A stretch of DNA of 63,602 nucleotides, filler included, from Choristocarpus tenellus KU-1152 (lineage: Eukaryota > Protista > Phaeophyceae): the NCBI GenBank assembly GCA_964200185.2. It is 12 parts of 12 records of this genome, joined end to end, with 100 filler letters (N's around TTAATTAATTAA, not from the genome) between each part and the next. Parts side by side here need not be neighbours in the genome. Positions count along the whole stretch, not along the records: positions 53,769 to 56,926 come from CAXNAD020021882.1; positions 57,027 to 60,540 come from CAXNAD020019520.1; positions 60,641 to 63,602 come from CAXNAD020023336.1; 9 more parts are not named here. The stretch is one strand, 5' to 3'. A model generated the notes under the pieces. It was not told the origin of the DNA. It saw nothing but the letters and a program-made list of their open reading frames with translations, and did no database searches. Shown here in pieces: positions 5,031-61,058 of this stretch; the stretch's first letter is position 1; every line of letters starts with the position of its first letter. The position numbers and the translations under genes are program-made.

Positions 5031-5670
5031 GATAGTGGTGAGTATAACAAATTATGTTGGGGGGAGGTTAAGTTCTTGTGTTTAGTTTTTGGGGAAGTTC
5101 AAATGTTTTTGGGGTCAATCCGAATGGTGAATAGTCGCGACTCGACTGCTCTGTTTTGGAATCCGTTTTTTTTTATGGATTAGTATCTTTCGCATTTATG
5201 ACCTTTTTTATTGTCACGAAGTTATTAGCCCGAAAGAAATAAAATATCCTAAACATAAGAACACTATTAAACATTGTAAGTATGGAAACCACTAATCAGT
5301 TACTTCACTACCATCAAATATTGTACTACTGTCTTCCTTATCTTCCCATGACCTTTTATTTCTCTAGGGCTTATACCGACAATGTGTAAAGTTTCCATTA
5401 CTTTCCCCCCTGGAAAATGTCAGAGGGCATAATAATAAATTAGTAGTAATATTGTAAAGATATATATTCACCACAAACGGAAAAAATATATAATTATAAA
5501 AAAATATATATGAAAAAATAAGAGAGGAAGAGGGATAGAACACCTTTACCATCAAAGCTGTCGATCTCACTACTATTTTTTATTATTATGTCCTCTGACA
5601 TTTTGAAGAAAACCCAATATGCAACTCAATCCATACCAATGACAAACAATTTATCAAGTCATAGAAGAAG

Positions 5671-6927: not shown

Positions 6928-9193
6928 TCACGATATAGTACATGCCTTGGATACCACCGTCTCCACCTATTGGGGTTGGTTCACGGTGTTAAAACCAATG
7001 GGAGGGGAGATTCAAGCAGAACTGACTGTGTCGCCACATGGAGACAAATGTGTACAGCTATATACTTGATACACGAGCAACCTGGTCATACAGAAGTCCT
7101 TGCACACCCACTTTGTGAACTAGAAATGACCAATGAACAAGAAAGAGCTACTCCTGTTCACTTCGATTGTAGTTTTGAATAAGAAAACGGAAAGTACAAC
7201 ACACATTGGTAGACAAGGACCTCCGCCACTGAAAATATCAATGGAAAGAATGAAATTCTCAATATGAAGTATGCACTAGTACTATGTGCTTCAATATACT
7301 GTTATGTAAGAGGACCATATCACTCCAGAGCACAAACAATTCCTCAAGGTAGAATACAGCATTTGCAACCACGTCTGACTCCATATTATGCTGTACTATT
7401 TCATGTTGGGGGGACAGATGTAGCTTGACTATCAACATTTTCTATGACTGGTCATGCAATAAAGTCACCCACATAGGGGAAAGTGCAACAACATCAAATC
7501 TGACGGATTTGATCAATCAGTCTCCACACACACCCTCACGCCATTGAAGAGGTATTGCTTGCAGTGCACCAAACCTTTCATCAAAATGAGTGAAAGTAAA
7601 TTAGAGGGTGCGAGGTTTGCCCTATTTGTCCGTTTGCGGCTGGGCTTCTCACGGGTTTTATATGACATTCCTACTCTGAAATATTTCGGAGTAGGTAAAA
7701 TGTGTATGATGAAAAGGTGTGTCCGGAACAAGGATATTGGCACTTCCTTACAAAAGACAACCAAAATTACATCAAAATCGGAACATTGCATTTTGGACCC
7801 CAAATGGACATGACTCTACCCTCTAAGATACTTTGACCCAATATGACTGGCAAGCAGTGGAAGACTACTTGTTCTAAGTTGGTTCTGTGCCCTGCCACTG
7901 GTAGCACCTGCTCCTTGGCTGCAAGGTATGCTGCTGGCCTTTCCTTCAAAAGTCTACTCTTCTGTTCCTGCAGCAAGCAGATTTCGTCCTAACAAGGTCA
8001 TGCATGGAGGTGAGGTTAGGAGAAGATGAGAAATATGTAGAGAAGGCTAGTCTAGAGTTCCCATTCGATATTCTTGGATTATTACTTCAAAGTTATTCTA
8101 CACAAACGTTCTTGGAAAGAGGAGAGAAGGCGAGGTGGAGAGGGTGGCATAAGGAGAGACAGAGGAGTCTCATCCTTCCCACTTATGCTTTGACGGTATT
8201 AGTAGAGATCAGGTAGATGATACAGGAAAAATAGTCCAATTTTCACTCTTTCTCCATCCGAATATTATTTTGGAGTGAAAATATCTTGGAGGGTACGAGT
8301 TTTGCCCTGTTTGTCCATCTGAGTCTTGTCTTCCCACGATTTTCTTTTATTACATTTTCCTACAACAAAATGTTTCGGAGTAGTTGAAATTTATATGTTA
8401 TGAGAAGGTGTGCCTGGACCAAGGAAACTCACACTTATTTACAAGCACGATTGCCAAAATCATATCAAAATCTTAACATTGGAATTTGGCCCTCAAATGG
8501 ACGCAGGCCTACCCTCTAAGATACTTTGGCTCTGTGTCCAGAACATGGATATTGATACTACGTAACAAACACGATGGTCAAAATTCCATCAAAATCGCAA
8601 CATTGGATGTTGGCCCCCACATGGACACGGCTCTACCCTCCAAGATACTTCGGCTCTTGGATTGTTTCTATTAAGATTGAGGGGTTGTAGTACAACCATG
8701 CCAGAACCGGCCTTCCCGCATAGTGTTGTATTTGTAATCACTGTTAGTGGAAGTAGCTGTTCACAATGTCAGGTTGGCTTCACTTGGATAGGGTATGTCA
8801 CAAGATACAAAGAGTGATTTGGCACTTGTATCAGACTCCCTAGCAGGTAATCTATGTATAAATACAGACAACTTCATAGTATCAACGCTACACTTGTCAA
8901 CACTGAACAACCCAACCCCCATTCACCACTACTTAACCTCTACTATGAGGGGCAGGCGTGCAAGAGTGTAAAAGAAAGACCATTCTCCCATTAGGGTAGA
9001 GCGCAACACTGCCATCCAAACAAGAGGAACTGTGCATTATTCCCAGATCCCGTGCACCAACTGGTAAGTCCAACCTGAAACTATCGACTCCCCTGTCTTA
9101 CCCGTAATCGGAGTTTGGTCTCTTCTATCGACTGGGCCTTGGTCTCTAAGTTGCAGTTGAGTTTCTCCAGCTCACGAACTTGGTTGGCGTGTT
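6928..9193 (-). CDS. 3' end of a coiled-coil protein ending in a CaaX prenylation motif (partial)
   Basis: Phase-compatible GT-AG exons 9193-9102, 7967-7908 and 6966-6928 splice to ...HANQVRELEKLNCNLETKAQSIEETKLRLR-EQKSRLLKERPAAYLAAKEQ-VETVVSKACTIS*. Confidence 0.5.
7588..7839. mobile_element. MITE family A (~255 bp)
   Basis: GAGTGAAAGT...TTAGAGGGT / ACCCTCTAAGATACTTTGACCC termini with a 3-bp TSD AAT. Confidence 0.9.
8273..8656. mobile_element. MITE family A with duplicated right half
   Basis: A full unit (8273-8532) is followed by a second right arm (8533-8656). The TSD TTG brackets the whole 384-bp composite. Confidence 0.85.
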
Positions 9194-9811
9194 CTGGATA
9201 ATTTACCAAGATGTGAGAGGTGTAAATGATGGAGTGGCAAGAATACGGCACAGGGACAGTGAGATAATGTTCAGGAAGAGAAATCACAAGGGATGTGTCG
9301 GGTAGTACTCCTGAGTACAATCACATTGCATAACTTGGACTGGTGTGGCATTGGTTCAATTTTGTCAGAGAAATTGAAGGGGAATCGATCCATACTGATA
9401 TTGTGGCAAGCAGTGGTAGCAAGCAGAGCCGACAATATTCTTCAAAGCTGATGCAGTTCTTTTCAAATCGAAAATTTGTGTGTTCTAGATATTAGCTGAG
9501 ACTGAGAGGTTGCATCTTGATGCATGTTAGGCACAAAATGCTACCAGGCATACACCCTAAGATTGAGTGTGCTATAGGTCAGAAGAGGAAAAAATTGAGA
9601 AAATTCAAGAGAGTTGGCATCTTCGTTTCCATTCCATTCATAGCACCAACTCCATTGTTAAAACAAGCCCTCTAACCTGCAGTATGTCTACACACATTGC
9701 CATATTCACGACCCTGGTTCTCAGCCTATCTTTAGACAACTGAGTGAGAGTATCTTAGAGGGTACGAATTTTGCCCTGTTTGTCCATTTGGGGCTTGGCT
9801 TCCCTTGGGGT

Positions 9812-9911
9812 NNNNNNNNNNNNNNNNNNNNNNNNNNNNNNNNNNNNNNNNNNNNTTAATTAATTAANNNNNNNNNNNNNNNNNNNNNNNNNNNNNNNNN
9901 NNNNNNNNNNN
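9812..9911. other. Artificial contig linker (44 N + TTAATTAATTAA + 44 N)
   Basis: Identical 100-nt spacers with stops in all six frames occur at 9812, 12612, 18291, 23205, 26107, 32908, 37666, 50079, 53669, 56927 and 60541. The window is therefore 12 concatenated contigs. Confidence 0.98.
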
Positions 9912-9929
9912 CATGCAAGGCCCCATAAA

Positions 9930-10189
9930 GAGCCGAAGTATATTAGAGGGTACAGCCGCGTCCATTTGGGGGCCAAAGTCCAATGTTGTAATTTTGATGT
10001 AATTTTGTCTATTGTGTGTGTTTAGGAAGTGTTAATGTCGATATTCTGGACACACCTTCTAATAACATACACATTTTACACACTCCAAAACATTTTGGAG
10101 CAGGAAAATGTCATTAAAAAACCCATGGGAAGCCAAGACCCAAATGGACAAACAGGGCAAAACTCGTACCCTCTAAGATACTTTCACTC
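9930..10189. mobile_element. MITE family A (opposite orientation)
   Basis: GAGCCGAAGTATATTAGAGGGTA ... TACCCTCTAAGATACTTTCACTC. Flanks AAA/AAT. Confidence 0.9.
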
Positions 10190-10581
10190 AATGTTGTTTT
10201 GTTGCAGTCAAACAACACACCTTATGCAATGCCCGTGCTGCTCACCCAATAGATCCTCCAGACAGTCCCATTCTTCCTCACGCCCATTCCCCCGGGGGCT
10301 ATGACAAGTTTAGGGTAAGACTATTCGACACGGATGTTCTGGATGGTGTTGTACTGCCTTAGTAGGTAAGTTGACTGTAATGTGGATGAGCGTTGGTGGA
10401 GGGTTGATAGGACATGCGAACATAATTCTGTAGGTGAAGAAGGCCTATTGGAGATTAGTTCTCAAGTGTCACCCGGACAATCCATACAACTCAACACACT
10501 GAGTTGATGGTGATTCTGTGATAAGAGGATTCACTCATAAACGTTGTCTTTTCTAACCCTCACCACCCTTGGGTTGAGCAT

Positions 10582-11080
10582 AAGTAAAAGAGTGAAAGTA
10601 TCTTAGAGGGTACGATTTTTGCCCTGTTTGTCCATTTGGGACTTGGGTTCCCACAGGTGTTTTATGACTCTTTCCTACTCCGATATGTTTCGGAGTAGGT
10701 AAAAATTGCACGCTATGAAAAGGTGTGTCTGGAACAAGGATATTGACACTTCCTCAAAAACATGATAGTCAAAATTACATCAAAGTCGGAACATTGAAAT
10801 TTGACCCCGAAATGGACGCGGCTCTACCCTCTAAGATACTTTGGCTCAAAGTATTTCAGAGGCTTAGGAGTTTTGCCCTGTTTGTCCGTATAGGGCTTGG
10901 CTTCCGATGGGTTCTTTATGTCATTTTACCTACTCAGAAACATTTTGGAGTAGGTAGAATGTATTCGTTATGAAAAGGTGTATCCGGAACAAGGATATTA
11001 ACACTTAGTATTAAACACGATAGTCAAAATTACATCAAAATCGCAACATTGGATTTTGGCCCCCAAAGGTACTTTGGCTC
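10582..11080. mobile_element. Nested MITE family A (younger copy 10590-10847 inside the left TIR of an older copy)
   Basis: The inner copy has TSD AAA. Removing it restores AAGTAAAAGTATTTCAGAGG, a degenerate left TIR. The outer copy has TSD CAT/CAT. Confidence 0.85.
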
Positions 11081-11501
11081 CATGTACCTACAAGCAAAGC
11101 ACCTTCTTTGCATCATCCCACTGACCCAAGGCCATATAAGCACTTTCCCGCATGAGCGTCAGCTTATAGACCATCGCCATGTCTGAAGGTTGTGTGAGCT
11201 CCAGTGCCTATGCGAAGAGTCCACAGGTGATCAGGGTGTTGACAAAAAAAGAACGCACAAGTGATATTGGCAGGATCAGTGGCGGAAGTACTGGCAGGAG
11301 GGTTGCTTTTCCCATACATCCCTATCCTGTCAGTTGCCGTGGTAGAGTTTCTAGGGAGGTGTCTCATCTTTGGAGTCCCTTGGCAGTCATGGAGTGATGC
11401 GGTGGGGAGTAGGACCACATACTACTCTGGTGATGAATACAGATCAAGTATCTTCAACTGCCTTGACATCAATATATACATCACTTCAAGAGTAGCGTCA
11501 C

Positions 11502-11678
11502 ATTGCTGCAGTCTATCACAACTTCAGCATGCTCCCAACTATTTTCCGATGCCTCTGCTCTCTTGATATGAAGGCGTGCTCTTGTCTCTTTCTGGGACTG
11601 GTCTATGGCATATATCGCTAAATTCAGGAAGTAGGTGGCACTCCCAAACCTGCCCTCTCGGAGGCATTCATCGGCCAT
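11502..11678 (-). CDS. Internal exon of a TPR-repeat protein
   Basis: AG/GT-bounded 177-nt exon reading MADECLREGRFGSATYFLNLAIYAIDQSQKETRARLHIKRAEASENSWEHAEVVIDCSN, a TPR-like pattern. Neighbouring exons are not resolved. Confidence 0.5.
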
Positions 11679-12738
11679 CTGTTTTTTGTTACAACGATGA
11701 AGGCACATGCACAAACAGGCAAGTACAGATTATCATCATTATACACACAGAGAGCACTTCATACCAATGATGCTGTACAACCAGAAATTGTATCCTACTT
11801 GTGCACACCAACAAGTTCACAAATTTGAGCATGTGTTCATGCTAATGTACCTCCTGGGCAAACACATGCAATGATCCACATGTATACTCATTCCATGGTA
11901 AGCCATCGGATAAAGGGGATGCACATTGTGGTCAGGGTTTACTGAGTAAGGTGTGGAAGAGGGGGTATAGGGTGTATCCAGAGGAAGGCAAAACATTTCA
12001 AGAGCAAGACGCTGCATGCAATAAAACGATGCACTGGGAATATCTGCCGATATTTTGTCTTTCATAGCATTTGAGTAGTCTACCACCCAAAACCTGGCAT
12101 TGGTTTCAACTAGAGCTCCTCTACCCCTATTACGACATTATAATTTTGTAAAACAACCTAGGTAGTGCAAGTGCGTTGGGGAGCTTAGTACGAGGGTCTG
12201 ATATGACATAATCCTCATATATTGGGAAAGCTGATGTCCTCCAGAAGATTGTATGAAACATGCCCAAGGGGCGGTCCATGTTCAGGGGGTCACCACCAAC
12301 TTGTGCTCTCCAATAATGGTGATGGGAGAGGATTGCTGATGTCCAGATGCGTGCTTACATGCAGCCTGAGTGCTTGATGGCATAAATACGCCTTCACTCA
12401 ACCTACTGCAATACCTTGATGTATTTCATGCTAGCTCAATATTTTGTCACTTTCCCAGTTGCATCCAACTTGCTAATTTTCTGGCACACCTAGTTTGTGT
12501 TATAGCTCAGATATCTTAGACCAAGCCACCATCTGTAAGTACTCATGAGTGAAAGTATCTTAGAGGGTACGAGTTTTGCCCTGTTTGTCCATTTGGGGCT
12601 TGGCTTCCCATNNNNNNNNNNNNNNNNNNNNNNNNNNNNNNNNNNNNNNNNNNNNTTAATTAATTAANNNNNNNNNNNNNNNNNNNNNNNNNNNNNNNNN
12701 NNNNNNNNNNNTACATATTTTACCGTAACTGTCCGATA

Positions 12739-13680
12739 GAGTTGGAAGAGTCTAATCGAACAGGTGTCTCCCACTTCTTGCAAGATTGTGGTTCCTCTGC
12801 AGGACACTAAACGGGTCCCCGTGTCGTCCCCCTTCAGGCTATCCTCGACCCTGACTTCACACACCTTCGTTGTAATAACCTCGACGATACATACACCATC
12901 GGGCCTGGTCAATACCAGAGATCCACTACGGAATCCAATCGGCAACCCCTCGGCACAATACCTGTTCGCTTCTCAAGACAATGCAGACGTGGAGACATAT
13001 CCAATGCCAAGTTTGGTCAAGGCACCACTTCCATCCTACGCGGGAGTGGGGATGCTATCGTCTGGGGGAAGATCCACGATGTTGAACTAGCCGATTCTGG
13101 GGCATGTGCTTACTCTGTGTGTTACCAAGGTGAGCATGGTGAGACCTCCTTGCTGCCTGGGCTGAAGTCGTTCATGGCAGAGGACGAGATCGAGGAGGGG
13201 GTCGAACAACTGAGGGAGAAGGAGAAGAGGGACCGTGATAAGACTGCAGCCCAGTGTGCCAACCAACGCTGCGTGCAGATGATAAACCAAGTGGACCGTA
13301 GAGTGGACGAGAAGGATACCGAGACATACATCCTCCTGCAACCGTCAATGAGGGTTGTGCCGGATTTGGACGGGGAAGGGGCACTTTATTCAAGAGCCAA
13401 GGGCAGGGGACTGTACTTTCGAATGGACAGTCAGTGGATGCGAGGGATCATCACCAAATACCAGCCCTGACACACGGTGTGAGTGGGAGAGGAGTGAGTC
13501 AGCTACCTCTACGAGGTGAAATGGGAGAATGGTGGCGAGGTGCGAAATATTTAGCTTGTTGAATAACGATACACTATGGGGCAAGACGCCAAGTCATGGT
13601 CCTGGTTCTGGATGAGTCCGACATTACCGTACTATAGAAGGGAGGGCAAAGCGTTGGACAGGCTACAATGTTCTGTAATT
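12739..13680 (+). pseudogene. Decayed intronless ORF with a Tudor-like C-terminal module, probably transposon-derived
   Basis: One frame of about 310 codons with six in-frame stops (12808, 13468, 13480, 13495, 13552, 13564) and no frameshift. It reads GRGLYFRMDSQWMRGIITKY...YLYEVKWENGGEVRNI...WSWFW. Confidence 0.5.
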
Positions 13681-16030
13681 CATACTCATGTGTCACCCTC
13701 TCCCTTCATCCATCCAGTACATCATGCTTCCCGTGGACATCCTTTCCTATAGAGGGTGGACATTATTGAGGCGCTTCATTTTCCATCTATTACATTCTGC
13801 GTTACATCAGTCCTATCTTTTCTACTAACATGTGCTCCTGCACCTTTGTTTATTGTCCTGATAACAATAGACGTTTAGAATCTGTATCTTGGTCAATTAT
13901 TTCCTTACGACTACTGGTATACGCCATAATGTATTTAGGGATGTATGGATAGAATTTATCATCAGAATTTAAAGTCTGCTTCTCTATGTTAAAAAGAGCA
14001 CGTGTTTGCCCCATCACAAATACATAAACACCACAACGGAATTAATTTGTCGTGATCTCGTGCAGTGTGGTCTTTTATATGCAGCGTTCCATGCACCCTA
14101 TATGCGTACTCAATCAATAATGTGCGCGCATTCGTCTCTCCCGCATATCGCACTTTAAGACATTGATACGACATTCTGCACTCCATAAGGGACATAATTA
14201 TATCCCTCTAATATACAAACGCGAACATATACCTGCAAACAACTCATCCCCTCCCATCCCCTAGTACATACAGAACTCACCTCCACAGGATGTAAACTCA
14301 AATCCAACGACCTTAAAACGACGCTATGGGAACGTTGCCCTTGATAACAGTTTGTAGGGTGTCAGGTGTCCTTCTATTTCGAAACTTTAAGCTAATTTTC
14401 GAACCATGATTGTTGTGAAATATCCGTGAATAGATAGATAGGGAGGGATGGGAGGAGGGGTAGGTGATGACATGATGGAGCACGTGTCATATATTTTGCT
14501 TTGGTATGGGGAAAAAAGGTTGACACCATCCAGGAAAGATGATGCAGCAGCGTCGTAGTGTTACACCACAAGACGTTTGGTAGGTGGGAGTTACCAACCC
14601 CGTGGTAATTTATATTATAAGGGAGGCACTGAAGGCAACTATGGGGGCACACGTAAATAACGAAGGAAAGAGGAAGGACAAGCAAATACGAAACCGTTTG
14701 ATGTTAAAATGGTGTTAGAGGGGAGGGGGAGGGTAGTTGCTAGGTACTGATTTACTACATACCTCCTATGCAAACCTGACGAAATGTTTTGGGAGACGAA
14801 ACGATTTGATACGCCCAAACTCCTGCCTGATACGTGTGAATGTTGTGTATTAATAATATTGTCAACTCCAATTGTTTGTCACCAACACAGAAATGCAGTG
14901 ACAGGGTAGAGGTCAGGACAGTGTGTCCAAGGGAGATCAAAACTGCAAGGGGATAGCTATCACACGCCTGACAGAGAGGCAAGGGAAAACAAAGATGAAC
15001 GACGGAGGGAACTGGAAGGTAGGGCGAGCAAGGGAGGAAGGAGCAGTTGGGATGCTGAGTGGGTTTATGGACAGTTGTGATGAAAACTTACCACTAAACA
15101 GTCCACTTCATCATGGCAGACAGACAGAGCAGATTGGAAGTGTGGAGAAGAGAGCAAGTAACCATAGCACTCTGCACGATAGTCAAGACGTGAGGACTTA
15201 ACCTAAGGAAATACGCTCCATATTCAGGGAAGATATGGGGGAACACACATAGATAGGGGGACAGGGGGTAAGGGACACTAATAACATAAACATCATCCCG
15301 AATGGAAATCAGAACATTAAAAATGGCATATATCATAAGTGTATTTATTATGAAAGAGGCAGAGAAAGTGTGAAGGTCATGAGGGGGGGAGGTTTTATGT
15401 TTTATAGACCTCAAATACTGGAACAAGTGGAAGAAAGGAAACGTCAATATGAATTCTTATGCGGGGAGTGAGTGTGAAAGGAGGTACTATCTTTGTTGTA
15501 GAAGAGTTGTGTTGCTTGCGCGCAAAGTTAATCCTCACTTCCACATCGCGCGCCACCCTTCAAAACTCAACAAACGAGGTTGGAGGGTGGGATTCTTGTG
15601 TCTCATCCCTTGAAGTTTTCGGAGGTGTGGTTACTAGACCAACGGCAACTTTATCCCTGCGAGCGAGACGGTTATAGGGGGGTGGGGAGCTCAAACGAGC
15701 TCGGTGGAGCTGGAAATATGTGCCAAAGTGTCACAATCGAGGGGTGATAGTGATATGGTGATGTGGGACATGTTTTGGAGGGAGACTGTTTTTTCGCACT
15801 GTCACATGCCCAGCTTGGGTTGGAACCCTAGCTAGGGAGTTAGACATTGTTGCGCTTGAAGAACTTAGAGTGTACAAGATCTGAAGTAATACGGAAGGGG
15901 AGAGGGGCGTGGTGATATTGACAAGACCGAACGGCATAGTTTGGACGTCAACCTAGAAAGGACATACGAGTACCTTCGTGATCCTGCCTCTTGCAATCGT
16001 GCAAGAAGCTCCGAGAAAATATACAAAAAA

Positions 16031-16540
16031 ATGTCGATTTGCAGAGATAACAAGCAACACCGAAAGGAAAGGCAGCGTCTGGGGCAGGGTGTGAGGCGAC
16101 CCCGCGCAGAGGTGAATACCACGCTTGCACTCCTTTACTGTTGCTATGTTCTCAAGCCGGTGTCTGGAGCTGCTTCTGGAGTGAATTCAAACAATGGCAG
16201 GGGACAGGGTCATCCACACGCACCAGAGGGGCTGCATCGTTCTGCTGCCGCTCGGGGGGGGTCCAGTGTGCCGCCGACTGTAGCCTTTTCTCAGACAACC
16301 GGGACAGATGAAGCGGGAAGGAGTGGGGGAGATAACTCCGGATTTGATAGCGAGGGGTCCATGGATGGAGGGAGTTCGTTTCACTCTGACTACTCCCACG
16401 GTGATGAGGATGGACAGGATGACTGGGGGCCGAGGCGAGGTGGAACAAGCTTTAGCGATGGGGGGCGTGCCTTGGATGATGATCAAAGGGAAGGGAGGCC
16501 TGATGGAAGCAGTCATAAGGATCTCAAGCAGTTGTTGCAG
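16031..16540 (+). CDS. Probable first exon of a hypothetical protein (basic N-terminus, hydrophobic stretch, Gly/Asp/Ser-rich region)
   Basis: GC-richer 170-codon open stretch from ATG 16031 to the donor CAG|GTTATG. Possible downstream exons at 17296-17308 and 17444-17479. Confidence 0.6.
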
Positions 16541-18709
16541 GTTATGATTGTACATTGCAATTATTGCAGTAATCAGTATCCTGTTCCTAGTATATTGCTG
16601 ACACCACTATAATCTCCATTTTAGGCGACACTATCATCAGTGACATAGTTATACAGTGTGTAGTCCACGAGTCAACGATCACTGCAGGGTACAAGCCCTT
16701 TATGATATTCACTCCCTCCTATGCTTCTGTTTCGTTTTCTTTTGCTGTCCCGTTGTTTTGCCGTTTATCTTGGTTAGCTTCAGTAGAGAGGAAATGGCCT
16801 TTTTTTTTTTAACACATTGTTGCAGACCTTCTCTCACCGATGCCACCCCTTACGTATGTTAAGTTCAGCCTCAAGACGGAAACCTCGGAGGATTTTTACT
16901 CCTTATTCCTGGCTTTTCTTCAGATTTTTGAGCGTTGTTGTCAGATCATACCTATTTTGTTGAGGTCCCTTTTTATTCGTATGGAGTAGGGTGACTGTGC
17001 ACAGCGAGATATTTACCCTGCCCCCAACCCCTAACCCTAGACAACTCCCCATTGTGGGGCGCTTGGTGGTATATCTAACCTTGCAATAATTGAAGACAAG
17101 TACAAGTAAAGAGTAGAATAGCTCAACACCTTTACTTTTTTTTCGCAATGTTCCACGGGTGTGAGCGCGATTGGGCTGCCCCTTTTTGTTGCAGTCATCT
17201 CTCGTAGTCCATGGTGAGGGGTACCTGTGCTCTATCCACATTTAACTACAAGGCTGACATGAAGAGCAGAGACCTAACATGCAATATTCCTGCAGGTTGA
17301 TGATGCGAGTGTATTCTATTTGTCTGGTTTTTTTTTCTATGATGTATACTAAGCTATACATCAATCTACTCCGAATTTATTGCTTCCCAAGCCAACTTAT
17401 GTATTGTGAAATCTAATATATATATGTATAGATCTAACCTCAGGGCAGTTTGAGATGAATTTCCCAACGCAGGAAAAAGGTACTACTCTTTTTTTTAAAT
17501 TGAAATGTTGATATTGGTCCCCTAAATAGACACTAGTTATTCCTTTCAATAAATAATCAGATTGTGAGCAAAAAAGCAGTCTCAGTGCTTCAAAAGCGGC
17601 CTATAATCTCAAGCCACTTTGTGAACTTATCGGAATACAAAAATGTACTACCCTAAGTTGATACACTTGAAACGTTGTATCTCTTAACACTGTAATTTGC
17701 TGGAAGTCTTTGCCCCTATATCAGCGCACTGTCCTGCCAACCCTATTGTCATGTCCATGTTGGTCCATTTCAATTCCTTGCATATGCAATCCTATTCCTG
17801 TAGTTGTTAAGTTAAAGAAGAACAAGACGCCAGTCTAAATCAATTTTTTTTCTCACTCTGGACACAATTTTCCTACCAGGGTACGTACACAGGGATTGAG
17901 TCGGCACTAAGTAATTCCACTTAGCATTCAAACACACGGTGTAAAGCTTAGCGTTAGGGTTTATGAATCTTGCTGTCAACACTCTTATCGTACTACTCTC
18001 TCCCTTTTTTTTTTTCTTGCACTCTTTTTATGTGTGTTCACAACAGTACGTGCGTGCTACTAGGTTTTTTTAATTTTTTTTTCTGGACTGTATCTGCGTA
18101 ATAGTCTTGAGAGACAGTGTTTGGTGGCCCTCCCCTTAGTGACACCAAAAAAGTAGAAAACTTCCGTCCCTGAATAGTTCGGCTTTGAGTATTGACTAGT
18201 TGGTAATGGGATAATGATGTCCAAGACCCCGCTCCCCCTCCCCAAAGCCCAACCCCACATTCCTGTCTCATTCCATACCCACTACTGTCTNNNNNNNNNN
18301 NNNNNNNNNNNNNNNNNNNNNNNNNNNNNNNNNNTTAATTAATTAANNNNNNNNNNNNNNNNNNNNNNNNNNNNNNNNNNNNNNNNNNNNGGTTAAGGAA
18401 AGTGCCCTTTTCCTGGTTTGGTCCCAAAGGGCCAATCTGGGGTGGCCCCCCCCCCCCCCCAGATACTTTGGGTCTTCATTTACACAAGTAATTTCCATAT
18501 CTCCGTCCTCATGCACACACAGTGGGAAGAGGGGAGAGGAGGGTTAGGCTATGTTGTGTTGATTAGATTCAAAGCATTTTGCCTGAGACAATCAGCACAA
18601 TCCAAGCATTGCTAGTAACCTTGCGCACTAAGCAAGATTTCTGTTGTCCCCTGCCTGTCCTAACTCAAGTACGCTCCCTCCTCTTTCCAGTGCAAAACCC
18701 CATACACAC

Positions 18710-21554
18710 CTGACTGTGAGCAAGCGATGCAATGGAGGCAAATAGATGTTCAACAGTGCTGATGACCCTGTCTTGTCACCCTCATCCACAGGGGCGACTC
18801 CCCCACGCCCATTTCCTTCTGAAGTGTGGCAAAATTGTCAAGTTGCATGTTTATTACCACCCCAAAGGAGAAACAGGATGCTTGAGGGTGTGAGTAAAGC
18901 ATAATATTGTGGGTTTAGTGAAGGCATTGGAAGAATGAGGAATAGATGGCGCGGGAAATCTTAATCCATACAAGGTGTGGATATTCACTAATTAAATTAT
19001 GTAGATATTATGCGACAGGATACCCAATTACTTCGGTTCATGAACACCTTACCCACTCTCAAGGAGTCCTGGGAAGGATCAATACAAGACTTCATGCAAG
19101 ACCGTTGGGAGGTGTTAGTTGCAAAGCTTGTTCCAGGAGAAGGATAATTATACCTGAGGTGCGGTGGAGTACCAGCTCATAGGATAATTATCCTTCTCAT
19201 AGGATCCCTTTTGGCACGATCATTTCTACCCCCCCAAATACAGAAAAATATGATTTTGGGGGGGCATATTGCGGTATTTTTGCCTTTTCAAGAGTTGTCG
19301 CGAAATATAACTAGGAGGAGAGGGGGGCGAGGTTAAAGCGGAGCTTCCGCTCATTTCGCCTTGTGTTGGTTCAAATTAGTCATGCTCAGCATCAATACAC
19401 ATCATAGAGAGGATGTTCACACGCTTGTATGGCATTGTGATATTTGCCAATTGCAGCACCTGGAAGGTACCCTCAGATGCTCACCGTTGAGCTCCTCACT
19501 GTTCTGATGCTCTGCGCAGGTCAGCACCTCAGTGCCAACCCAGCCAAGTTTCTTTGCCTCAACCAATAGCACGGCTTCAGCTTCCCTTAATGCCTTTGCC
19601 ACTTCACAAAGGATTGAAAGTACATGCCCATGGTCTGTTTCACAGAGGCTCTGCTGCTGACGAATCTATATCGAGAGCAGGGGGGTCGAATTTACCCATT
19701 ATCAAAACAGTGAACGGGCAGGAATTGGGAAGGCAAGCCAAGGATGTAAGCCAACCGTGCTGATAATGCTGGCCACCACGATTTGGGCATGAGTTAATTC
19801 CTTGTGTCACTGCTTTTGAAAACTGTCCTTCTTTCAGGGAGGCAGCTAAGGTTGTATTTGAAAGCATGGAATCAGTTGTGTTGACCAGACAATGATTTTT
19901 TGGACTTTGAACACCGAGAATAATCCCTACAGGCACATATCCTAGCAATATATACATCTCAACAGTCTTGCTTATGGAGGAACACCCTTCAGCTTAAAGT
20001 ATGCCAAACATTCCCTACTTAAAGTTATGCAACGGGTCACATATAATGTTCTTGTTGAGCAGAGTTATTGTCACAAACTTGGTGGATCTTCCTGGCAGTA
20101 GTACTCTCTATAATCTGGAGCAAGGGATGTACTTTGAAGTAGTAGTGAATGCCCCGTGAGCATGACAAGGCATTGAGGGATAGATGTCTTACCTTGGACA
20201 ATAGGTGAAGGACAGACACATAGTCAAGACCAAGAGTTTCATCCTGCATGTATGATTGTGACAGGGAATGACAACCAGCAATTGCCATGTCCAGGTTCCC
20301 CTCTGCTACAGCTGCCTGCATGCACCCCAGGGCAGGGGTGGGTATATTGGACAGTGCAGGGGGAACAGAGCAACATGACAGGGGATGGAAATGGAACAAC
20401 TTATGTAGCCAAGGGAGAAACTAAATGGCGTGCACAATCCAGTTATGTGAAAGCACTAGCTGGGCAGCACTTATGTTAATTACTATTTACTCTTAGCTGA
20501 CCACAAGAGAGCAAGGACATCTACCATACTACACACTGCCCTCAGTCCTCACACACATGGTTGCGAATAGCAGGCAGTGACAGGTGGTTGCATTTGTACA
20601 AATTGGATAGGGAATTGCTACTTTGGTTCAGAGGACTTTAGCTGGTATGTGGTCAGCATTCTTTCTTTGTTGAACATAAAACTGTACTGGGCTCATACTA
20701 TCTGGGAGGGGGTAGCGGCTGACAATTTGGGGTCAATTTTTTCGTGTCGTGTTTTTGGGGTGATTTGGTTGCATACGTCGGATGGATAATGTAAATGCAC
20801 TTTTCCTGATTTCGACCAAATGGAAACCCTGGTGTCGATCCCCGCCCCCCCAGATACTTTAGGTCTTGCACAACTGCAGTGCGAATGTCTGGTTTTCATT
20901 TTTTCCCAAACATCTCACTCATATGGTACCCCCTATAATGATCTGAGCCTTTTTGCTGTAGGCTCGGCTTCTGTAGTGCCTTGATTTAGGAGAGGAGTTC
21001 AGAGATAGAAGCAGACTATTCTAATGGTAAACATGTCCACTCACTCGCATCTACACATATTCAATATAGTCCAGAGTATTGACACTTTTATTGAGAGACT
21101 ACGTAATATATGCATTGCATTACTAGAAAAAGAGCCAAAAAGACTTTTGTGACAACCCCAAAACAGCACATTGAGTCCTTTATGCATCTAGAGTTAGTTA
21201 TTTACTTATTTTCTATTGCTGTCTCCCCCTTTAAGATGCCACACACCAACTGTTGCTGGGTTGTTCATTTTCTGACCTAAATATAGCTGCTCAGTATTTA
21301 CTACCCATGAATTTGAATTTGATGGGGCGATCAAAGTATGCCACCCTGAAAATGTAGCTTTTCTTGTTTAGGTCAAGCTGGGAGTTATTTTAGAGTGTTG
21401 TTGTGTGACCTCAATTTCAGCCTTTGGCACAAGGATCCCCCTGCCTAACCTGCGCCTTGAGTCTCTTCAATCGAAGGTAGACCACCCTTTCCCCTACAGT
21501 TTCAGCCTCCTCCAAACCTCTCCTGCACTGGACAATGGCATCTTCTGTGCGTCC
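18710..21554 (-). CDS. CFAP54: CFAP54-like flagellar central-pair protein, internal exons (partial)
   Basis: Five phase-compatible exons (21554-21450, 20315-20193, 19665-19460, 19153-19053, 18818-18710) give GRTEDAIVQCRRGLEEAETVGE...ALREAEAVLLVEAKKLGWVG...LLNIYLPPLHRLLTVR. The NIYLP..LL motif and helical pattern resemble CFAP54 as recalled from memory; no search was run. Confidence 0.6.
20690..20865. mobile_element. MITE family B (intronic)
   Basis: Same termini and internal TTGGTTGCATACGTCGGATGG as 3085-3263. Flanks CTG/TTG. Confidence 0.88.
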
Positions 21555-21819
21555 CTGCAGATGAAAGAAGAGATGATTTGTCATATTGCAGGAATTGTTA
21601 GGAGGGAACGAGTTCTTGGTTCAGGAATAGTGTATATCCATGGAGTTTTGGGGGGGTTTCAAAAAATACCCTGTGAGTAGATGCTAGCAATAGGTATATT
21701 TGAGCACCATACTAAATGTACATCCTGTCTATGTTTGTGCTCCAGCCACTTGAGGCCTAGTATTAATTCTTCACATGTATCATTAATGTTCACTCAATAG
21801 ACCATCCATAATGTATCCT

Positions 21820-22342
21820 GACCCAAAGCAATCAAGAGGGTAGGAGTTTTGCCCTGTTTGCGAGCCACATTATCTTAGAGGGTAGAGCTGCGTCCATTTG
21901 GGGACCAAAATCCAATGTTGCGATTTTGATGTAATTGGCCATTGTATTTGCTAGGAAGTGTCAATATTTATGTTCTGGACGCACCTTTTCATAACTTATA
22001 CATTTTACCTATTCCGAAATATTTTGGAGTAGGAAAATGTCATAAGAAAACTCATGGGAAGCCAAACCCAAATGGACAAACAGGGCAAAACTCATACCCT
22101 CTAAGATACTTTCACTCTTGCCTGTTCGGGGCTTGGCTTCCCAGGGGTTTTTTATGCCCTTTTTCGGTTTTCTGTCTGAACACAGTACTACCTAAAATGT
22201 ATACAACTATGAAAGGTGTGTCCAGAGCAAGGATATTGACACTTCCTAACAAAACACGATAGCCAAAATTATATCAAAATCACAACATTGGATATATGAT
22301 CCTGAACGGATGTGGCCCTACCCTCTTAAATGCTTTTGACTC
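21820..22342. mobile_element. Nested MITE family A (inverted copy 21862-22117 inside an older copy)
   Basis: The inner copy has a 4-bp TSD TTGC and the outer copy has a 4-bp TSD TCCT. Confidence 0.85.
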
Positions 22343-23394
22343 TCCTTCCAAAAAGAACTTGCTCATGGCGATCTGATATCAACCCAGACCAGTGTGTAAT
22401 GGTGTGTTAATCATCAAGGATGATACTATATTGAACTTTTCCGAAATTGGATGCCAAAATGGTGAGACCATGTGAGGGTGATTCGGACACAACTACATGC
22501 TCTAGTGTAATCACTCACATCAGTTGGGGATAGAGGAATGGGGGTTGGGAGGAGAGGGAATGCATGCAAGTGTATGATAGGTGACACAGAAGGAAATCTA
22601 TTATTAGGGTCTTCATGGAAAAGACCTTCTGCCCGTGAAGTTTGTTATGAAAAATAGGATATTTCATTCCAGGGATTCCTTTCCTTTGGTCAATAGAAGG
22701 TACTGTCCGCTGACCCCGAACAACATATGCACTAATTCTCAAAATATTTCGTTTCACTTCCTTGGGGAACTTGGAAGATTTGGGACAACAACTTGAGACT
22801 GCTCAGGTTTTTAAAACTTCCCACGAATCTACAGCAGCAGATGTGACTCAATGGAATGCTTCAGAGAGAGCCTCAAGGCTTAGTGCGATATCGTTTATGA
22901 CAAAGGACTACTGACTACTTCAAAATGAGCTTTGAGATAATTCCTGTCACTCTATCCCCCAGGTTCACATCACAACACTAATGTTCTCACATTCAACCTT
23001 TGACCCTCAACTTCCTAATCCAACCTCCCCTTTAACCCCTGTCCGTTTCACTATATGAGCTTCTGTGTGACCATGTAAGTTCTTGGGTAGAATTTTTTCT
23101 GTGTTTCTTCTGATTCAAGCACGAGACACAAAGTATCTGGGAGGGGGGGAGGGTTCTACACCAGGGTGTCCATTTGGATCAAAATCAGCAAAAGTGCATT
23201 TATANNNNNNNNNNNNNNNNNNNNNNNNNNNNNNNNNNNNNNNNNNNNTTAATTAATTAANNNNNNNNNNNNNNNNNNNNNNNNNNNNNNNNNNNNNNNN
23301 NNNNCCCACCCCACCTCCTTCCTCGCCCCAATTACCACCACCACCTGCCCCACTACCCCCCCCCTTCTCCACAGAAAGTCTAGGCCACCTACCA

Positions 23395-24779
23395 CTACAT
23401 GCACGTCTGCCTTGGGGGGTCCACACTCCAAGTGTAGCTTGTGCCCTTGACCAAGTCCAGATGGAGCTGGAGCAGGTAAATATCACCATGGTTAGGAAGG
23501 TCCCAGGCAGGCTCTGCAACATCCACACAATCGCCCTCATGCACACAGTGGATCTCCTGATACATGAGGTAACTGCCCCAAGGCTGAAGGGGGGGACACC
23601 AACAATAGGGTTCATCAGAGCGTCCAAACTCTTCCACATGATCTTTGGCCTCTTACTGGCAAATGATGGAAAATTCTCGAGGGAGGAAAGGTTTGCCCGG
23701 GTTGATTCAGGGAACATCCAAGAGCTAGTCACATGGCTAATAGAACGATCCCAGAGGACCAGCAGACGTAGGGAGGACCCTGGAGAGGACCCCAAATCCC
23801 GCCAGGAACTCGCTGCAGCTCTGGGTCACCACCATGGAGGAGGTTCCAAGGGGGCAAGCGTGCTCCAGCACAATCCAGAGCCCGGGGGACAGAGGAGACT
23901 TTCAACATACTGGTCCCTATATACCCGAATGAGAACCAGGACGAGCTTAGGAAGGCCATCATAAACGCAAGAGACTGGGTACACAAGGGAATGCAAGATC
24001 TAGGGAACAAAGGTACTGCCTCTGAAGGGGAGAGCACCCCTACCTCCCTTCGAACAGCCTTCATGAGGGCTAACAGCAACTCGGCACCAGGCCCTGACGG
24101 GATGCGCCCAAGCCACACCAGATCAGCCATCACGACAGATGTTGGTCACAAAGAGGTGGCGGAGGCATTTGAAAAACTACAGGAGCTAGCCTACACCTCC
24201 CTGGACTCTCTACCCCTAGAGTTTTGGACACTTCACACAAACTCCAGACTGTCCGCAATTGGGGAGAAGTGCCGCCCGGTTGCCTGCGTTTTTTTTTTCA
24301 GAAGGGCATATGCTTCAGCTTTCTGCACAGACCGGCGCCCCTACCTGGAGGAATTTTTCGGTGGAGTAGGACAATTTGGCGTCAGGGTCCCAAATGGAGT
24401 AGAATGTGTACTCCTGGATATTCGCCTAAGGATTGAGTGCGGAGAATGGGTTATCAGTGGACGGAATGAATGCTTTCAACAGTGTACGTCGCTCAGCTTT
24501 CATTCAGGCCCTCCCAGAGACTCTACCAGTACTCCTACCTTATGTCTCCAAGGTATATGGGGACACCCGCAATCTTCTTTTTCCCCTGGATGAGGGCAGG
24601 ATGAAGATCCTGCCATCAAGATCTGGGGCACAACAGGGAGACCCACTGGACCCCCTCTTATATTGCACAGCAACACAGAAGCCCTTGCAACAGGTCCAAT
24701 CAGTTTTTGGACCCCAAGGGATGTCCTCCCGAAGCTAACTGGATGACATATCCATATCAGCAAGAGAGATAGGCCCTAA
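23395..24779 (+). mobile_element. CRE-clade non-LTR retrotransposon reverse transcriptase (frameshifted, truncated)
   Basis: Motifs SAPGPDGMRPSH, CRPVAC, GQFGVRVPNGVE, DGMNAFNSVRR, SGAQQGDPLDPLLY and *LDDI are spread over three frames. The sequence is cut at 24780 by an LTR. Confidence 0.9.
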
Positions 24780-25330
24780 TGTTACAGGCGCCCCTCGATG
24801 CTCACCTCCACAGAATGTATAGCTCCAATCTACGGGCTTATAGATGATACTGATGTACGTATAGGACTCCTGATGCACAAGTCGTCAAGTATGCTGGATC
24901 TCTCACTTGGATTATCGTAAATAAAATGGTATAAAAAGGGACTGATCAACAATGTCGATCACAATCGGGGACCATAATAAATAAATAATCAAGAAATACA
25001 AATATATCAAATCTGGAACTTCAATGTCATAATGGTGTTTATGAAACCGCCATCAAGACATATCGCCTGCGACATGCCCCCCTAGCATGAAGCATAACTG
25101 CTTCAACGCGATAAATAGGCGATTGGACAAGGAGATATAATGTCGCTCCTCGTCCTATCATGAACGCAGCAGAAATGAAGAGAATGTCGCTTCCAGGTTC
25201 TAACATATCAGTAGGCAGCGTTGGGGATCCAGCGGAGGAGGAAACCTGGAGGGAAAACTCCCTTCCAACGTTTACCCTACGACGACAGATATGTCGGCGC
25301 GACACTCGTACCTCACGGCACTCACTCTGC
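24780..25330 (-). mobile_element. 3' end of a Ty3/Gypsy-like LTR element: LTR 24780-25074, PPT and chromodomain-like remnant
   Basis: The LTR is closely similar to 47761-48005 but has no TSD. On the minus strand it is immediately preceded by CTAGGGGGGCA (PPT-like). Upstream translation RRRVNVGREFSLQ...MLEPGSDIL weakly resembles a chromodomain. Confidence 0.6.
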
Positions 25331-56810: not shown

Positions 56811-57580
56811 GTAGGCGACATCACAAACCGGTGGGGGAGGGGGGGGGGGGGGTGCTGATGTAGAGACAGGGCGGGGAATATATATGGCAGGATAGGTTGA
56901 GCGAACCGAGTCTTTGTGGGAAGCGTNNNNNNNNNNNNNNNNNNNNNNNNNNNNNNNNNNNNNNNNNNNNTTAATTAATTAANNNNNNNNNNNNNNNNNN
57001 NNNNNNNNNNNNNNNNNNNNNNNNNNGGGGGGGTGGAGGAGGGGAGGGGAACAATTCAAGATATAGGGCAAGTACGATGTTGCATGGTGGATATCTTCAT
57101 GCATCTCCTTGGCAGAACACAAGTTGTATCGATCCCACTATTGACAAAAAAAATCGGAATACTATTTTGTGCAAGTAATTGTTGACACACCCCATTTGGC
57201 TTAGCACAATAAAAAAGTGTCCATCCCATCGTTGGTGTACAAAAATATACTAACCCACAAAATACTAAAAAGAAAATGAGTTGGCGCAATCGGTTGTTGA
57301 ACTCTGTACAATATACACACATGAACCCTAACCCTAACCCCATACAGAAACATTAAAATATAAACACGGTAGCACAATATCCATATCTCCAGACAAGTTC
57401 GTAAAACCTATGTTTACTCAAAACCGACGCCCTAACCCTAACCCTAGCCCTCATCTGAACCTGCTTACTGTACCTACCTTAGGTCCAAACACCCTGTCCA
57501 ACAAAACACAAAAGTCACACAACAAATGACCCAGAACACCGCATACTTCACCACACTGCAGCTGGACCGACACAGCCCTC

Positions 57581-58613
57581 TGTGCAATATAGGCTGATAG
57601 TCTATATGGTTTAAACGTGTTTAGTGAACACTACTTCCGCGTCGGAAGAGATATCCAGCCCAAAGTGAACCTGTCAAGGTTTGTCAGGTGGCCAAGGTAC
57701 ATTCGCCTGCAGCGCCAGCGCAAGATCCTTGTTCAACGGCTGAAGGTACCCCTCAGCATCAACTAGTTCAGCAAGTGCCTTGATAAGAACCAGGCCACAG
57801 AAGCTCTGAAGCTTCTAATGAAGTACCAGCCAGAGGACAAGAAGACCAAGCAGGAGCGCCTCAAGGGTATTGCCAGGAGTAGTTCTCTTTTGCATAGGTT
57901 ATGAGCCTCATTGGTATGTAAGCGGACTCCCGTATGCTGCCACTATGGAGTGGAGCGCGGGGGCATACACGGGAGAAGTGGGCTGAATAGCGGATGGCTT
58001 TGGTGAGTTACTCGGGCGGCAAAGGACTGTACCGGATACTCCAACCTGCATACTGCATTCCAGCACCTCCCACAGTCGACACATCATTCGAAGAACACTG
58101 CCTGTACGATGAATACGTTAGGCATCGAGAAGCCTTGTGGTTCCTGCTGGGACAGACCATGAGGGGTGCTGCAGCTATGGTGGTCTTTTGCCAGCAACTT
58201 TGCTACACGCTCATGGGGGAGTGTGCAATATAGGATGATAGTCTATATGGTTTATACGTGTTTAGTGAACACTACTGGACAACGGGAATGTTGGCTAAGT
58301 GGAACGAGTGTTATTGACATCTGGTCGTGTGTGTAAAGTAATGAGTTCAAACCTCATATGATCGATTCTTGATTACTTGATATAAACGGACTGATGTAAG
58401 GGTTCTTACATAGTACTAGCTATACCGGACCAGTGACATGTACGATGTAACGGCAGGATACGGCTTGATGAGTCAGCTGATATAAGTAATAAACAATAAG
58501 ATAATGAGAGAGAGCACCCCCAACCACCAAGGGCTGTGCTCACTCCGCTAATATGATATCCATACCTCACAAAGCAAAATACTCTACTTGAGAAGTTCTC
58601 TTTTGCGTACGTA
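57581..58613 (+). mobile_element. Internally deleted (TRIM-like) Ty1/Copia LTR retrotransposon
   Basis: TSD CCCTC (57576-57580 and 58614-58618). 5' LTR 57581-57896. PBS GGTTATGAGCC at 57897-57907, the half-tRNA-Met-type site typical of Copia. Gag N-terminal remnant (LPLWSG...W..*RMALVSY..KGLY...ALWFLLGQTMRGAAAMVV) fused to a pol-end-like stub. PPT GGGGGAG ending at 58221. 3' LTR 58222-58609. Confidence 0.85.
57635..57874 (+). pseudogene. RPL7A: Fragment of 60S ribosomal protein L7a (eL8) coding sequence with an in-frame stop
   Basis: Translates as [82 protein letters not shown] at 57764 replaces a conserved Gln. Flanked by LTR sequence, not splice sites. Confidence 0.95.
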
Positions 58614-61058
58614 CCCTCATCAACGATCACACACCGCTATTTAGTCCCAGTATACGCTGGAATGGATAGCCCAGACCGGGAACATTGACACACAGCTTGA
58701 CTGATATGACCCTGGGCCATGACCCCCCACAAACACATCCGTCTACTGGGGGGGGGGGTCCAAACTCTTGTTTTGCTACAGTGAAGAAAACGTTTTTGGC
58801 ATTATGTGGTGATATATATGATTGGTAGAGGAAGGAACTGCTCCATATAAAGCCAAACATTTTATCTCCTTCACCACAAATGACTACAAAACCTTTCCCT
58901 CTGTGGAGGTCCATCACCAAGTGTCGCAATATCTTTTTCACCCAAAATGGAGCAATCCATCCCCTCTCCAAGCAAGCAAGCAAGGTGAGAGTGCACTGCT
59001 ATGCTGCAGGTGCCTCGCGTTCCTACGAATAACAACAATAGCCTGCCAAGGAAAACCCATGTCAATGTTTAGAGACCGTAAATCGATGGTGAGATCCTTG
59101 AATTTACAGAGAACATGGTTCTGTGAAACCTCCTGATCACCATCCTGTGGAGAACAGGCAAGGATTTAGGTTTGTATGGAACAGGGCAACAATAACTGGG
59201 GTTGTTTTCCTATATGCTGTTAAATCATTGAGATACCACTGTCTGACAAAACTCAGAGACTGGGAAGCTAGCTTTCCACAATCCGTGGGCCGTAACCCAC
59301 GAATTGCGTACTCTCCCCGAAGTGGCCAAGTCAATCTTCGCGTTTCCCATTTCGTAGATCTCAGGACCACATTCTATCTGTTTATCTTCACATCGTAGGG
59401 AGTTGGGAAAGTGGTCTAGCGGGGATTCAATCCTCAACGTCTGACATATAATATGTGCAAGTGACCTCGGTGACAGCTCAACTTCTTGTATCCACCAATA
59501 TCAAGGTTTCTTTCTACTTCCCCATCACCTTGCCAATACAGGTGCAGTTTATGTTGTGAGTTCAAATTTCACTACTGAGGGAAGCACAACAAGCTTTGTT
59601 AACAACACTTCTGGTTCTTATGGAGGTGAGAATGTCTGGCTAGATTTTGAGCCAAAGTAATTCAGAGGTAGGCAAGGTTGCATTCTAAGATGTCCATAAA
59701 TGATAAAAAATACACTATTTTGTACAATTGAGAAACTGCCTTTGCTGAAGTTTGGTGTCCCTTCGTGTGTGGAAAGAGGGTTTATGACTTTTTCGTGCAC
59801 TGCTTTTCCCATACAGCGATCATATGGGGTGTATTGCACTGGGGTATAAATATGACTTAAGAATTAAAAAGGACTCAAATCTGCTTACCTCCCAATTACA
59901 TGGACTCTTCATTAAAAAAAACCTTTTAACTGGACCCTCATAGATTGAGCATATCCGGGAATGTTATGTTCAGTAGGAGCGCTCGTGGAAATATGCGCCA
60001 AACATTAAACACTTTGCAGGACACTGTCTACCGTGAATATGCCTGACCATCTTACATGTACGTCATCTGTTAGCAGACAAAATTGTGGGTGAATCGGAGT
60101 GTGCATATCCCGAAAAGGATTCTATATGAAATGGATAGATTCTACTCACCATTCCAACAAAGAACCGTCAACCCATCAGGTGTACCCTGCACTAATCAAC
60201 CTCTAGTGTCACTAGTAAGCACTGTTTAGTTGTATGAACTATTTAGGCTCACGGCAGGAACCTAGTGGATGAGAAAGTGAGAGTTTTGTTGAAGGTGCGT
60301 TTTCAAGGTTTTCTTTGTACAAGGTCGCCCTTTATTTATTACCGAGCAGGGCATTTGCGGTGATCTGCCAACCAGAGTGTATACCCGCACATGGTCTGGT
60401 GGTAAACTTCCTTCACGACCGTAGGGGGATGGATATATCGGCCCTACCCGGTAGGCATTACACTCTGGTAGGATGCTTACGCTTGCCTACAACATAGCTA
60501 TGACCCAAAGTATCTGGGGGGGGGGGGGGATCTACAAAAGNNNNNNNNNNNNNNNNNNNNNNNNNNNNNNNNNNNNNNNNNNNNTTAATTAATTAANNNN
60601 NNNNNNNNNNNNNNNNNNNNNNNNNNNNNNNNNNNNNNNNGGGGAAAACCAAAAAAAACAAAAAGAAAAAAAAGGGGGGGGGGGGGGAGAGGGAGGGGAA
60701 GCATTGTGTGGGGTAGTTTCCACAAAGGGGCTTCATTTCTATAATTTTATTGGCTCTATTACTAGTAAGCTATTGGATCCGCCCTGTTGGATGAAGTAAG
60801 TTATATACATATTTCATATCTCCGACTGGTTCCACTTACACCATGCTGCCCACACTACATCACTTCATCCTGTGCTCCCGCCTACATGCAAGCAACACAT
60901 GCACTAAACTTCCTTGTTGGATAAGGGTAGAGAGTACAAAGATCTATTCTACATAGCAGAACACACCAATTACAGCATTCACTCATATTGATCACTTAAA
61001 AAAGCAAGACGCAACAAAGAAAAAGATCCTGTGAGAATTTGTTCAGGTTTTATCTTAC

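Follow-up and report, generated by a model that had tools for sequence, protein, structure and literature searches.

In the brown alga Choristocarpus tenellus KU-1152, one copy of an abundant, short retrotransposon with long terminal repeats (LTRs) carries a fragment of the host's ribosomal protein gene eL8/RPL7A in place of the core of its 5' LTR, and its 3' LTR is ordinary. The copy occupies positions 57581-58613 on the plus strand of a stretch of 63,602 nucleotides, joined from parts of assembly GCA_964200185.2 and referred to here as the window; the piece examined is 57027-60540, which comes from record CAXNAD020019520.1. Both junctions of the chimeric 5' LTR are present in sequencing reads, the element entered its site once and as a unit, and the fragment derives from a message of the host. 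Our tentative preference is that reverse transcriptase (RT) changed templates onto an RPL7A mRNA while this copy was being made, rather than that a break in the 5' LTR was repaired later. The chimeric LTR is a single unusual case of the known gene capture mediated by LTR elements, and its mechanism lies between two known processes.

Structure and classification of the element

The element measures 1,033 bp and represents one insertion between two copies of the target site duplication (TSD) CCCTC (5 bp), located at 57576-57580 and 58614-58618. It consists of a chimeric 5' LTR of 320 bp (57581-57900), a non-coding internal region of 321 nt (57901-58221) and an ordinary 3' LTR of 392 nt (58222-58613), all on the plus strand. 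Both LTRs open with a head of 55 nt that begins with TGTG (57581-57635 and 58222-58276) and close with a common tail, which takes up 27 nt in the 5' LTR (57874-57900) and follows the core (58277-58586) in the 3' LTR. A direct-repeat search aligned the two heads at 96% identity over 55 nt, and 57877-57899 with 58590-58612 at 87% identity over 23 nt, which gives a common tail of ~23-27 nt; both repeat pairs are direct and in the same order. The initial annotation had described these arms (the first 55 bp with two mismatches and the last 20 bp) as well as a 3' LTR core with TATAAA and AATAAA, and all of this was borne out: the core is 310 bp long, with TATAAA at 58380-58385 and AATAAA at 58488-58493 on the plus strand. 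It is non-coding and unrelated to the centre of the 5' LTR, as local alignment of 57636-57873 with 58277-58586 reached a score of 9, compared to a mean of 9.4 and a maximum of 15 for shuffled sequences.

The TG start, the purine tract GGGGGAG before the 3' LTR, the TGGTAT after the 5' LTR and the order of TATAAA (58380) and AATAAA (58488) all indicate the plus orientation. The opposite orientation lacks all four features and was rejected, as the minus strand has neither a TGG after an LTR nor a purine tract before one. The polypurine tract (PPT) comprises only 7 purines (58215-58221) and abuts the TGTG with which the 3' LTR starts at 58222. A motif resembling a primer binding site (PBS), TGGTATGTAAGC, is found in the internal region at 57912-57923 on the plus strand; its TGGTAT starts 11 nt past the end of the 5' LTR and was matched to no tRNA. 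Compared with TGGTATCAGAGC, which we take to be the PBS of the plant initiator-tRNA type, only the first six and the last three bases agree, which is a weak match. The earlier statement that TSD, PBS and PPT are all in place is thus right for the TSD on both sides, holds for the PPT in a short form only and is too strong for the weak and offset PBS.

Four public runs from one study, coded X1 to X4, were analysed as Logan contigs (k=31). A contig of X3 (record 19, 1,455 nt, 93% identical to the flanks) runs from 59975 to 58614 and then directly through 57575-57488 with a single CCCTC, and represents the empty site. With only one CCCTC in this contig, all 1,033 bp must have entered together. Splicing was rejected as the source of the joint between 57575 and 58614, as none of GT-AG, GC-AG or AT-AC is available in any of the six registers allowed by the TSD. 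Apart from this, one contig of X2 (depth 42) reads from the left flank through CCCTC, GATACAT and CCCTC into the right flank (57580/58614). It looks like a third state of the site, resembling a TSD plus footprint, which would be unexpected for an LTR element.

The copy belongs to a very abundant group of non-autonomous LTR retrotransposons similar to TRIMs (terminal-repeat retrotransposons of miniature size), and TRIM-like is a defensible label. It has terminal direct repeats, a TSD within the range of 4-6 bp together with an empty site, and a PPT abutting the 3' LTR. With 1,033 bp and no Pfam domain it also agrees with the size (about 1 kb or less) and the lack of gag and pol that characterize TRIMs, its LTRs of 320-392 bp falling at the long end for this group (PMC4717578). 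Pfam returned no real domain among the open reading frames (ORFs) of the element (six scanned) or of the flanks, and a weak sub-threshold match to Cadherin_tail (E 0.039) was discarded as noise. A protein search with the internal 79-aa ORF had no match, and ARAGORN and Rfam detected neither a tRNA nor an RNA gene in the piece 57027-60540. The repeat search found no terminal inverted repeats at the element ends, and for this lack of inverted termini a DNA transposon was rejected. The LTR termini are not of the type 5'-TG...CA-3', since the LTRs start with TGTG and end in ACGTA (3' LTR) and AGGTT (5' LTR). The missing CA weakens the assignment to LTR retrotransposons without excluding it, and non-canonical LTR ends occur in some families. 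The hallmark of Ty1/Copia elements is a pol with integrase ahead of RT and an RT of the Copia clade. As our element lacks coding sequence and its PBS match is weak, there is no evidence for the label Copia that it had been given. The scans of metagenome contigs and the protein search with the internal ORF did not yield an autonomous partner either.

The RPL7A fragment and its source

In place of the LTR core, the centre of the 5' LTR consists of ~238 nt of eL8/RPL7A coding sequence in sense orientation. The fragment lies at 57634-57873 on the plus strand (captured span 57634/57636 to 57873), in the frame set by 57635, and covers residues ~39-115. Solved eL8 chains match the part before an in-frame stop with E 2e-15 (chain residues 39-81) and the part after it with E 9e-8 (residues 76-108). 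Pfam gave no match for the fragment because this N-terminal stretch falls outside the Pfam model. The GC content at third codon positions is 72%; the LTRs and flanks have 40-44% GC. A full-length eL8 ORF would have about 250-270 residues; here the coding sequence is limited to residues ~39-115, is bordered by LTR sequence at either end and contains a TAG at 57764-57766 (plus strand). This stop stands where the conserved INQF has its Q, which makes the insert a pseudogene fragment rather than an uninterrupted frame. The initial annotation was correct in that sense RPL7A sequence replaces the core, but the 241 uninterrupted base pairs that it reported are ~238 nt with a stop inside. The fragment has neither a poly(A) tail nor a TSD of its own.

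Run X3, probably an RNA run, covers the eL8 fragment at a depth of ~15,000-25,000 and the flank at ~16. Its record 20 (depth ~14,700) differs from 57636-57774 at 4 positions (97% identity). Contigs of X3 continue past both 57634 and 57873, and in frame they read ...PLFPARKRS-FRVG... and ...GIA-AAKAAGQQPA, where the hyphens mark the ends of the captured span; both are good eL8 sequence. Since these continuations are eL8 coding on both sides, the donor is the expressed RPL7A of the host itself. A protein search with the fragment ORF yielded only eL8 pieces of other organisms, with an identity of 78% or less. On genomic contigs of other eukaryotes, eL8 ORF-exons begin their homology at G(Q)DIQPK and end it at LD(R/K)xx-G, and these ends mark two intron positions of eL8 that are conserved in other eukaryotes. 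Our fragment reads through both of them, at FRV-GRDIQ and LDKNQ-ATEAL. This read-through and the colinearity with the abundant X3 sequence make an mRNA or cDNA template likely. The fragment thus has the features of a partial copy of a processed cellular mRNA, with the introns judged from eL8 of other species and not from the host gene.

Junctions and copy number

At the left junction, the LTR reads ...AACACTACT followed by GGAC, the gene ...GCGCAGCT followed by TCCG and the chimera ...AACACTACTTCCG, with CT (57634-57635) common to LTR head and gene. At the right junction, the gene reads ...GTATTGC followed by TGCAGCC and the chimera ...GTATTGC followed by CAGGAGTAGTTCTC. In some family copies, GAGTAGTTCTC is preceded by ...CTCTACCA (at loose ends at 57877, where the agreement is just 0.63), and the microhomology on this side is at most one C (57873) or none. 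By chance, at least 2 nt are expected at about 16% of junctions and at least 1 nt at about 44%; junction microhomology carries no weight for either template switching or break repair. The microhomologies proposed initially, ACT on the left and GAG-AG on the right, had to be rejected when compared with the real RPL7A flanks.

Both junctions occur in contigs of independent runs. Record 24 of X4 is identical to 57581-57682 and has 55 nt and 47 nt on the two sides of the left junction, and record 2 of X1 matches 57657-57906 with 1 difference and extends at least 33 nt beyond the right junction. As an overlap of 2 nt cannot produce such joins in k=31 contigs, reads with both junctions exist, and the junctions are not the assembler chimera that the initial annotation had considered. 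In record 24 of X4, the head that carries the two private variants of this copy is physically linked to RPL7A. Two letters of this record past 57581 do not align. Record 2 of X1 (490 nt) contains, after 57906-57657, 240 nt more that are unlike the window, as a second context for the junction between eL8 piece and tail or as a graph cross-over. These two records and the GATACAT contig of X2 could reflect another copy of the chimeric LTR, another context in which it occurs, or low-coverage graph artefacts.

The depth of the unique flank is about 5 for X1 and about 25 for X2. Depths of 1,800-5,400 (X1) and 7,600-23,700 (X2) are reached in the head, in the tail with the PBS region, in the internal region towards its 3' side and at either end of the 3' LTR, and the eL8 bin 57735-57852 has a depth of 14 and 30, respectively, equivalent to one to three copies. 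The eL8 piece is about single-copy, and head, tail and internal region are repeated thousands-fold. Exact high-copy contigs span 57884-57958. Beyond the 55-nt head, copies of the family normally proceed like the 3' LTR (24-32 contigs cover 58284), and loose ends reveal that other family copies join the window sequence either at 57877 or at 57881. In the 3' LTR, the centre (bin ~58325-58442, with TATAAA) is near single-copy as well, with a depth of 12 in X1 and 97 in X2, and record 4 of X1 matches 58265-58505 exactly at depth 3.7. Given this low-copy centre between ends that are repeated thousands-fold, the LTR centres of the family are heterogeneous. Metagenome contigs were scanned for exact patterns, one from the PBS region and one from the LTR head, and neither had a match.

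Flanking sequence

The flanks (58614-60500 and 57488-57575) exist in two versions that are about 7% apart and of equal depth in X1 and X2; records 12 and 13, for example, have 20 and 0 differences over 59222-59473. X3 carries only the divergent, empty-site version. The two versions could be haplotypes, homeologues or an old duplication. To the left of the element, two short interstitial (CCCTAA)n blocks are located at 57324-57344 and 57430-57451, 85-89 nt apart. Many contigs of the runs skip the stretch between these blocks, and many join (CCCTAA)n directly to 60497-60507. There, a very high-copy repeat begins (depth 11,000-42,000; right end 60502-60540) that includes a run of 14 G, which suggests that the end of an abundant element abuts telomere-like repeats. 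Runs of 11-14 G occur in the G-rich start of the piece (57027-57049), at 58749-58759 and at 60516-60529, and one variant in X3 adds GG at 58747. These long G runs may be parts of repeats or artefacts of the sequencing chemistry.

Origin of the chimeric LTR

In normal reverse transcription, a single U3-R-U5 copy gives rise to both LTRs. Two unlike LTRs therefore require either a mistake towards the end of synthesis or some change afterwards. The explanation that we tentatively put first is RT template switching onto a co-packaged RPL7A mRNA during synthesis of the copy. RT would have departed from the element template within the terminal repeat, copied a portion of the mRNA or of its cDNA and resumed on the element close to the head, so that the LTR ends, the PBS region and the PPT used for priming and integration would be kept; the chimeric element would then have inserted on the plus strand, duplicating CCCTC. 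Three routes could lead to this product. The minus strand might have been completed on plus-strand strong-stop DNA with a detour onto the mRNA, as supposed initially, leaving a heteroduplex to be resolved later. The plus-strand strong-stop DNA might itself have become chimeric by a detour onto RPL7A cDNA, without a heteroduplex. Finally, the minus strand might have passed the PBS into U5 of a second packaged RNA, switched to the mRNA and returned near the start of U3, in which case a plus strand primed at the upstream PPT would set the left end. Each of the three is a form of LTR-mediated retroposition (PMC5131818) and yields this product with a sense insert, and they parallel the abnormal template switching that has been invoked for BARE-2 and Veju (PMC13317346, PMC1950507). 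The step favoured by the initial annotation, a switch after the second transfer, is one of several routes with the same product and is here also indistinguishable from break repair.

Judged by the PPT, the TG start and the order from TATA to AATAAA, the insert is in sense, as every RNA-templated route predicts, and this orientation, its colinearity with the mRNA and the replacement of the core of one LTR only are as originally described. Moreover, the replacement spares exactly the parts required in cis, namely head, tail and PBS region. The divergences between the LTRs (about 6/79) and between fragment and source (4/139) are compatible with one date for insertion and capture. Because the promoter and the poly(A) part of its 5' LTR were lost, the copy would have been dead on arrival and have stayed single. 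Several points weigh against template switching. The microhomology of 2 nt and 0-1 nt is not above chance (P about 0.16 and 0.44), and LTR-mediated retrocopies are reported with a median microsimilarity of 6 bp (PMC5131818), above the 0-2 nt observed here. Asymmetric LTRs need a rarer route, be it chimeric plus-strand strong-stop DNA, a resolved heteroduplex or minus-strand read-through past the PBS. The introns of RPL7A are inferred from other species, and no single read joins flank, element and other flank. In addition, the departure of record 2 of X1 left of 57657 and the unaligned letters in record 24 of X4 hint at another copy or context.

Some of these points are readily accommodated if the element inserted with two normal LTRs and a later break in the 5' LTR lost about 310 bp, which end joining replaced with a filler of RPL7A cDNA or of DNA templated by its mRNA, a sequence of events that we consider possible but on balance doubtful. 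End joining typically shows 0-2 nt of microhomology at its junctions, as here, the asymmetry would not depend on a rare reverse-transcription pathway, and deletions with filler or templated insertions at breaks are well documented (PMC7156093, PMC1976456, PMC11724301). The divergence between fragment and source (2.9%) is, if anything, below half of that between the LTRs. However, such a repair predicts the sense orientation in just 50% of cases, a random loss of 310 bp would both lie entirely within the 5' LTR and spare head, tail and PBS region in only about a tenth of cases, and free RPL7A cDNA would be required in the nucleus. Overall, we favour template switching over break repair.

It is unlikely that the RPL7A-bearing repeat belongs to a small subfamily or a duplicated segment, with a copy of which gene conversion or recombination would have given the present element its 5' LTR, or that the window joins two family copies via high-copy parts common to both. 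Such an origin would explain why record 2 of X1, with a depth of 10.5 about twice that of unique sequence, leaves the window at 57657, and why X4, which is labelled as another organism, holds the exact left junction with apparently other letters beyond 57581; with an internal region and LTR ends repeated thousands-fold, an assembler could also swap copies. Yet 57735-57852 has a depth of only about 1-3 copies in X1 and X2, TSD and empty site suit a single element with these two ends, the head with the private variants is linked to RPL7A in record 24 of X4, and a 5' LTR without promoter and R cannot spread by normal retrotransposition. The least probable of all explanations, and a very improbable one, is that there is no LTR retrotransposon at this site but two neighbouring fragments of another repeat class, such as a DNA transposon or a tandem repeat, that bracket a processed RPL7A pseudogene. 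The 3' end other than CA, the offset and unmatched PBS and the X2 contig that resembles an excision footprint would agree with this. On the other hand, terminal inverted repeats are absent, and the repeats present are direct copies beginning with TG, the 3' one of which is immediately preceded by a purine tract. The 1,033 bp with their 5-bp TSD are missing as a unit from the empty site, and the RPL7A piece shows neither a poly(A) tail nor a separate TSD.

The proposal that the LTR acts as a cassette sampling the transcriptome found no support, as family copies usually continue past the head like the 3' LTR and the RPL7A piece is about single-copy. We regard it as improbable that the family LTR is a conserved head and tail around an exchangeable centre, with RPL7A as one case of repeated switching that samples cellular RNAs. 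The sole hint in this direction is that both LTR centres (57636-57873 and ~58325-58442) are low-copy between ends repeated thousands-fold. No function is likely for a single dead copy. A TSD-flanked copy with a capture in one LTR alone preserves, as a natural record, an error at a particular late step of reverse transcription or the use of RNA or cDNA in break repair, and under either mechanism it pins down the positions of the switch points. Should this genome, which is very rich in repeats, contain further copies of this type, they could reveal how LTR promoters are remodelled and how frequently messages for ribosomal proteins enter virus-like particles.

Comparison with known systems

LTR elements are known to capture host mRNA, but such captures have nearly always been described between the LTRs. 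In LTR-mediated retroposition, partial mRNAs replace parts of LTR elements by a double template switch in virus-like particles, and retrocopies of this kind have been reported for Ty1 in yeast and for Drosophila, mosquito, fish, chicken and mouse (PMC5131818). Like these retrocopies, our fragment is a partial, intron-less copy of an mRNA in sense orientation with element sequence on both sides, no poly(A) and conserved integration ends. In those cases, however, the mRNA replaces internal ORF sequence between LTRs that are alike, whereas here only the core of one LTR was replaced, and the microsimilarity of 1-2 nt contrasts with their median of 6 bp (PMC5131818). Captures by non-autonomous LTR elements include an Arabidopsis TRIM with a P450-like fragment, the GmaRetroS TRIMs of soybean and Bs1 of maize (PMC4717578, PMC13317346), those of TRIMs being exon-only (PMC4717578). 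The Choristocarpus element resembles them in being non-coding, about 1 kb in length and flanked by a TSD of 5 bp, and in carrying exon-only host gene sequence. The captures known from them, though, sit between the LTRs and are often multi-copy, whereas the eL8 piece lies inside the 5' LTR, is about single-copy and removed the promoter.

Foreign sequence within an LTR has been attributed to abnormal template switching in BARE-2, which received it from BARE-1/Wis-2, and in the long Veju elements (PMC13317346, PMC1950507). As in our case, the LTR itself is chimeric and switching between co-packaged RNAs is invoked. In contrast, the donor was another retroelement or unknown DNA, and both LTRs of a whole subfamily are affected, instead of one LTR that received a ribosomal protein mRNA. 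Filler DNA at repaired breaks (PMC7156093, PMC1976456, PMC11724301) is similar in that unrelated sequence replaces a deletion with 0-2 nt of microhomology. These fillers are usually short or originate from nearby DNA, and a stretch of 238 nt colinear with the message of an unlinked gene comes near the upper limit of their lengths.

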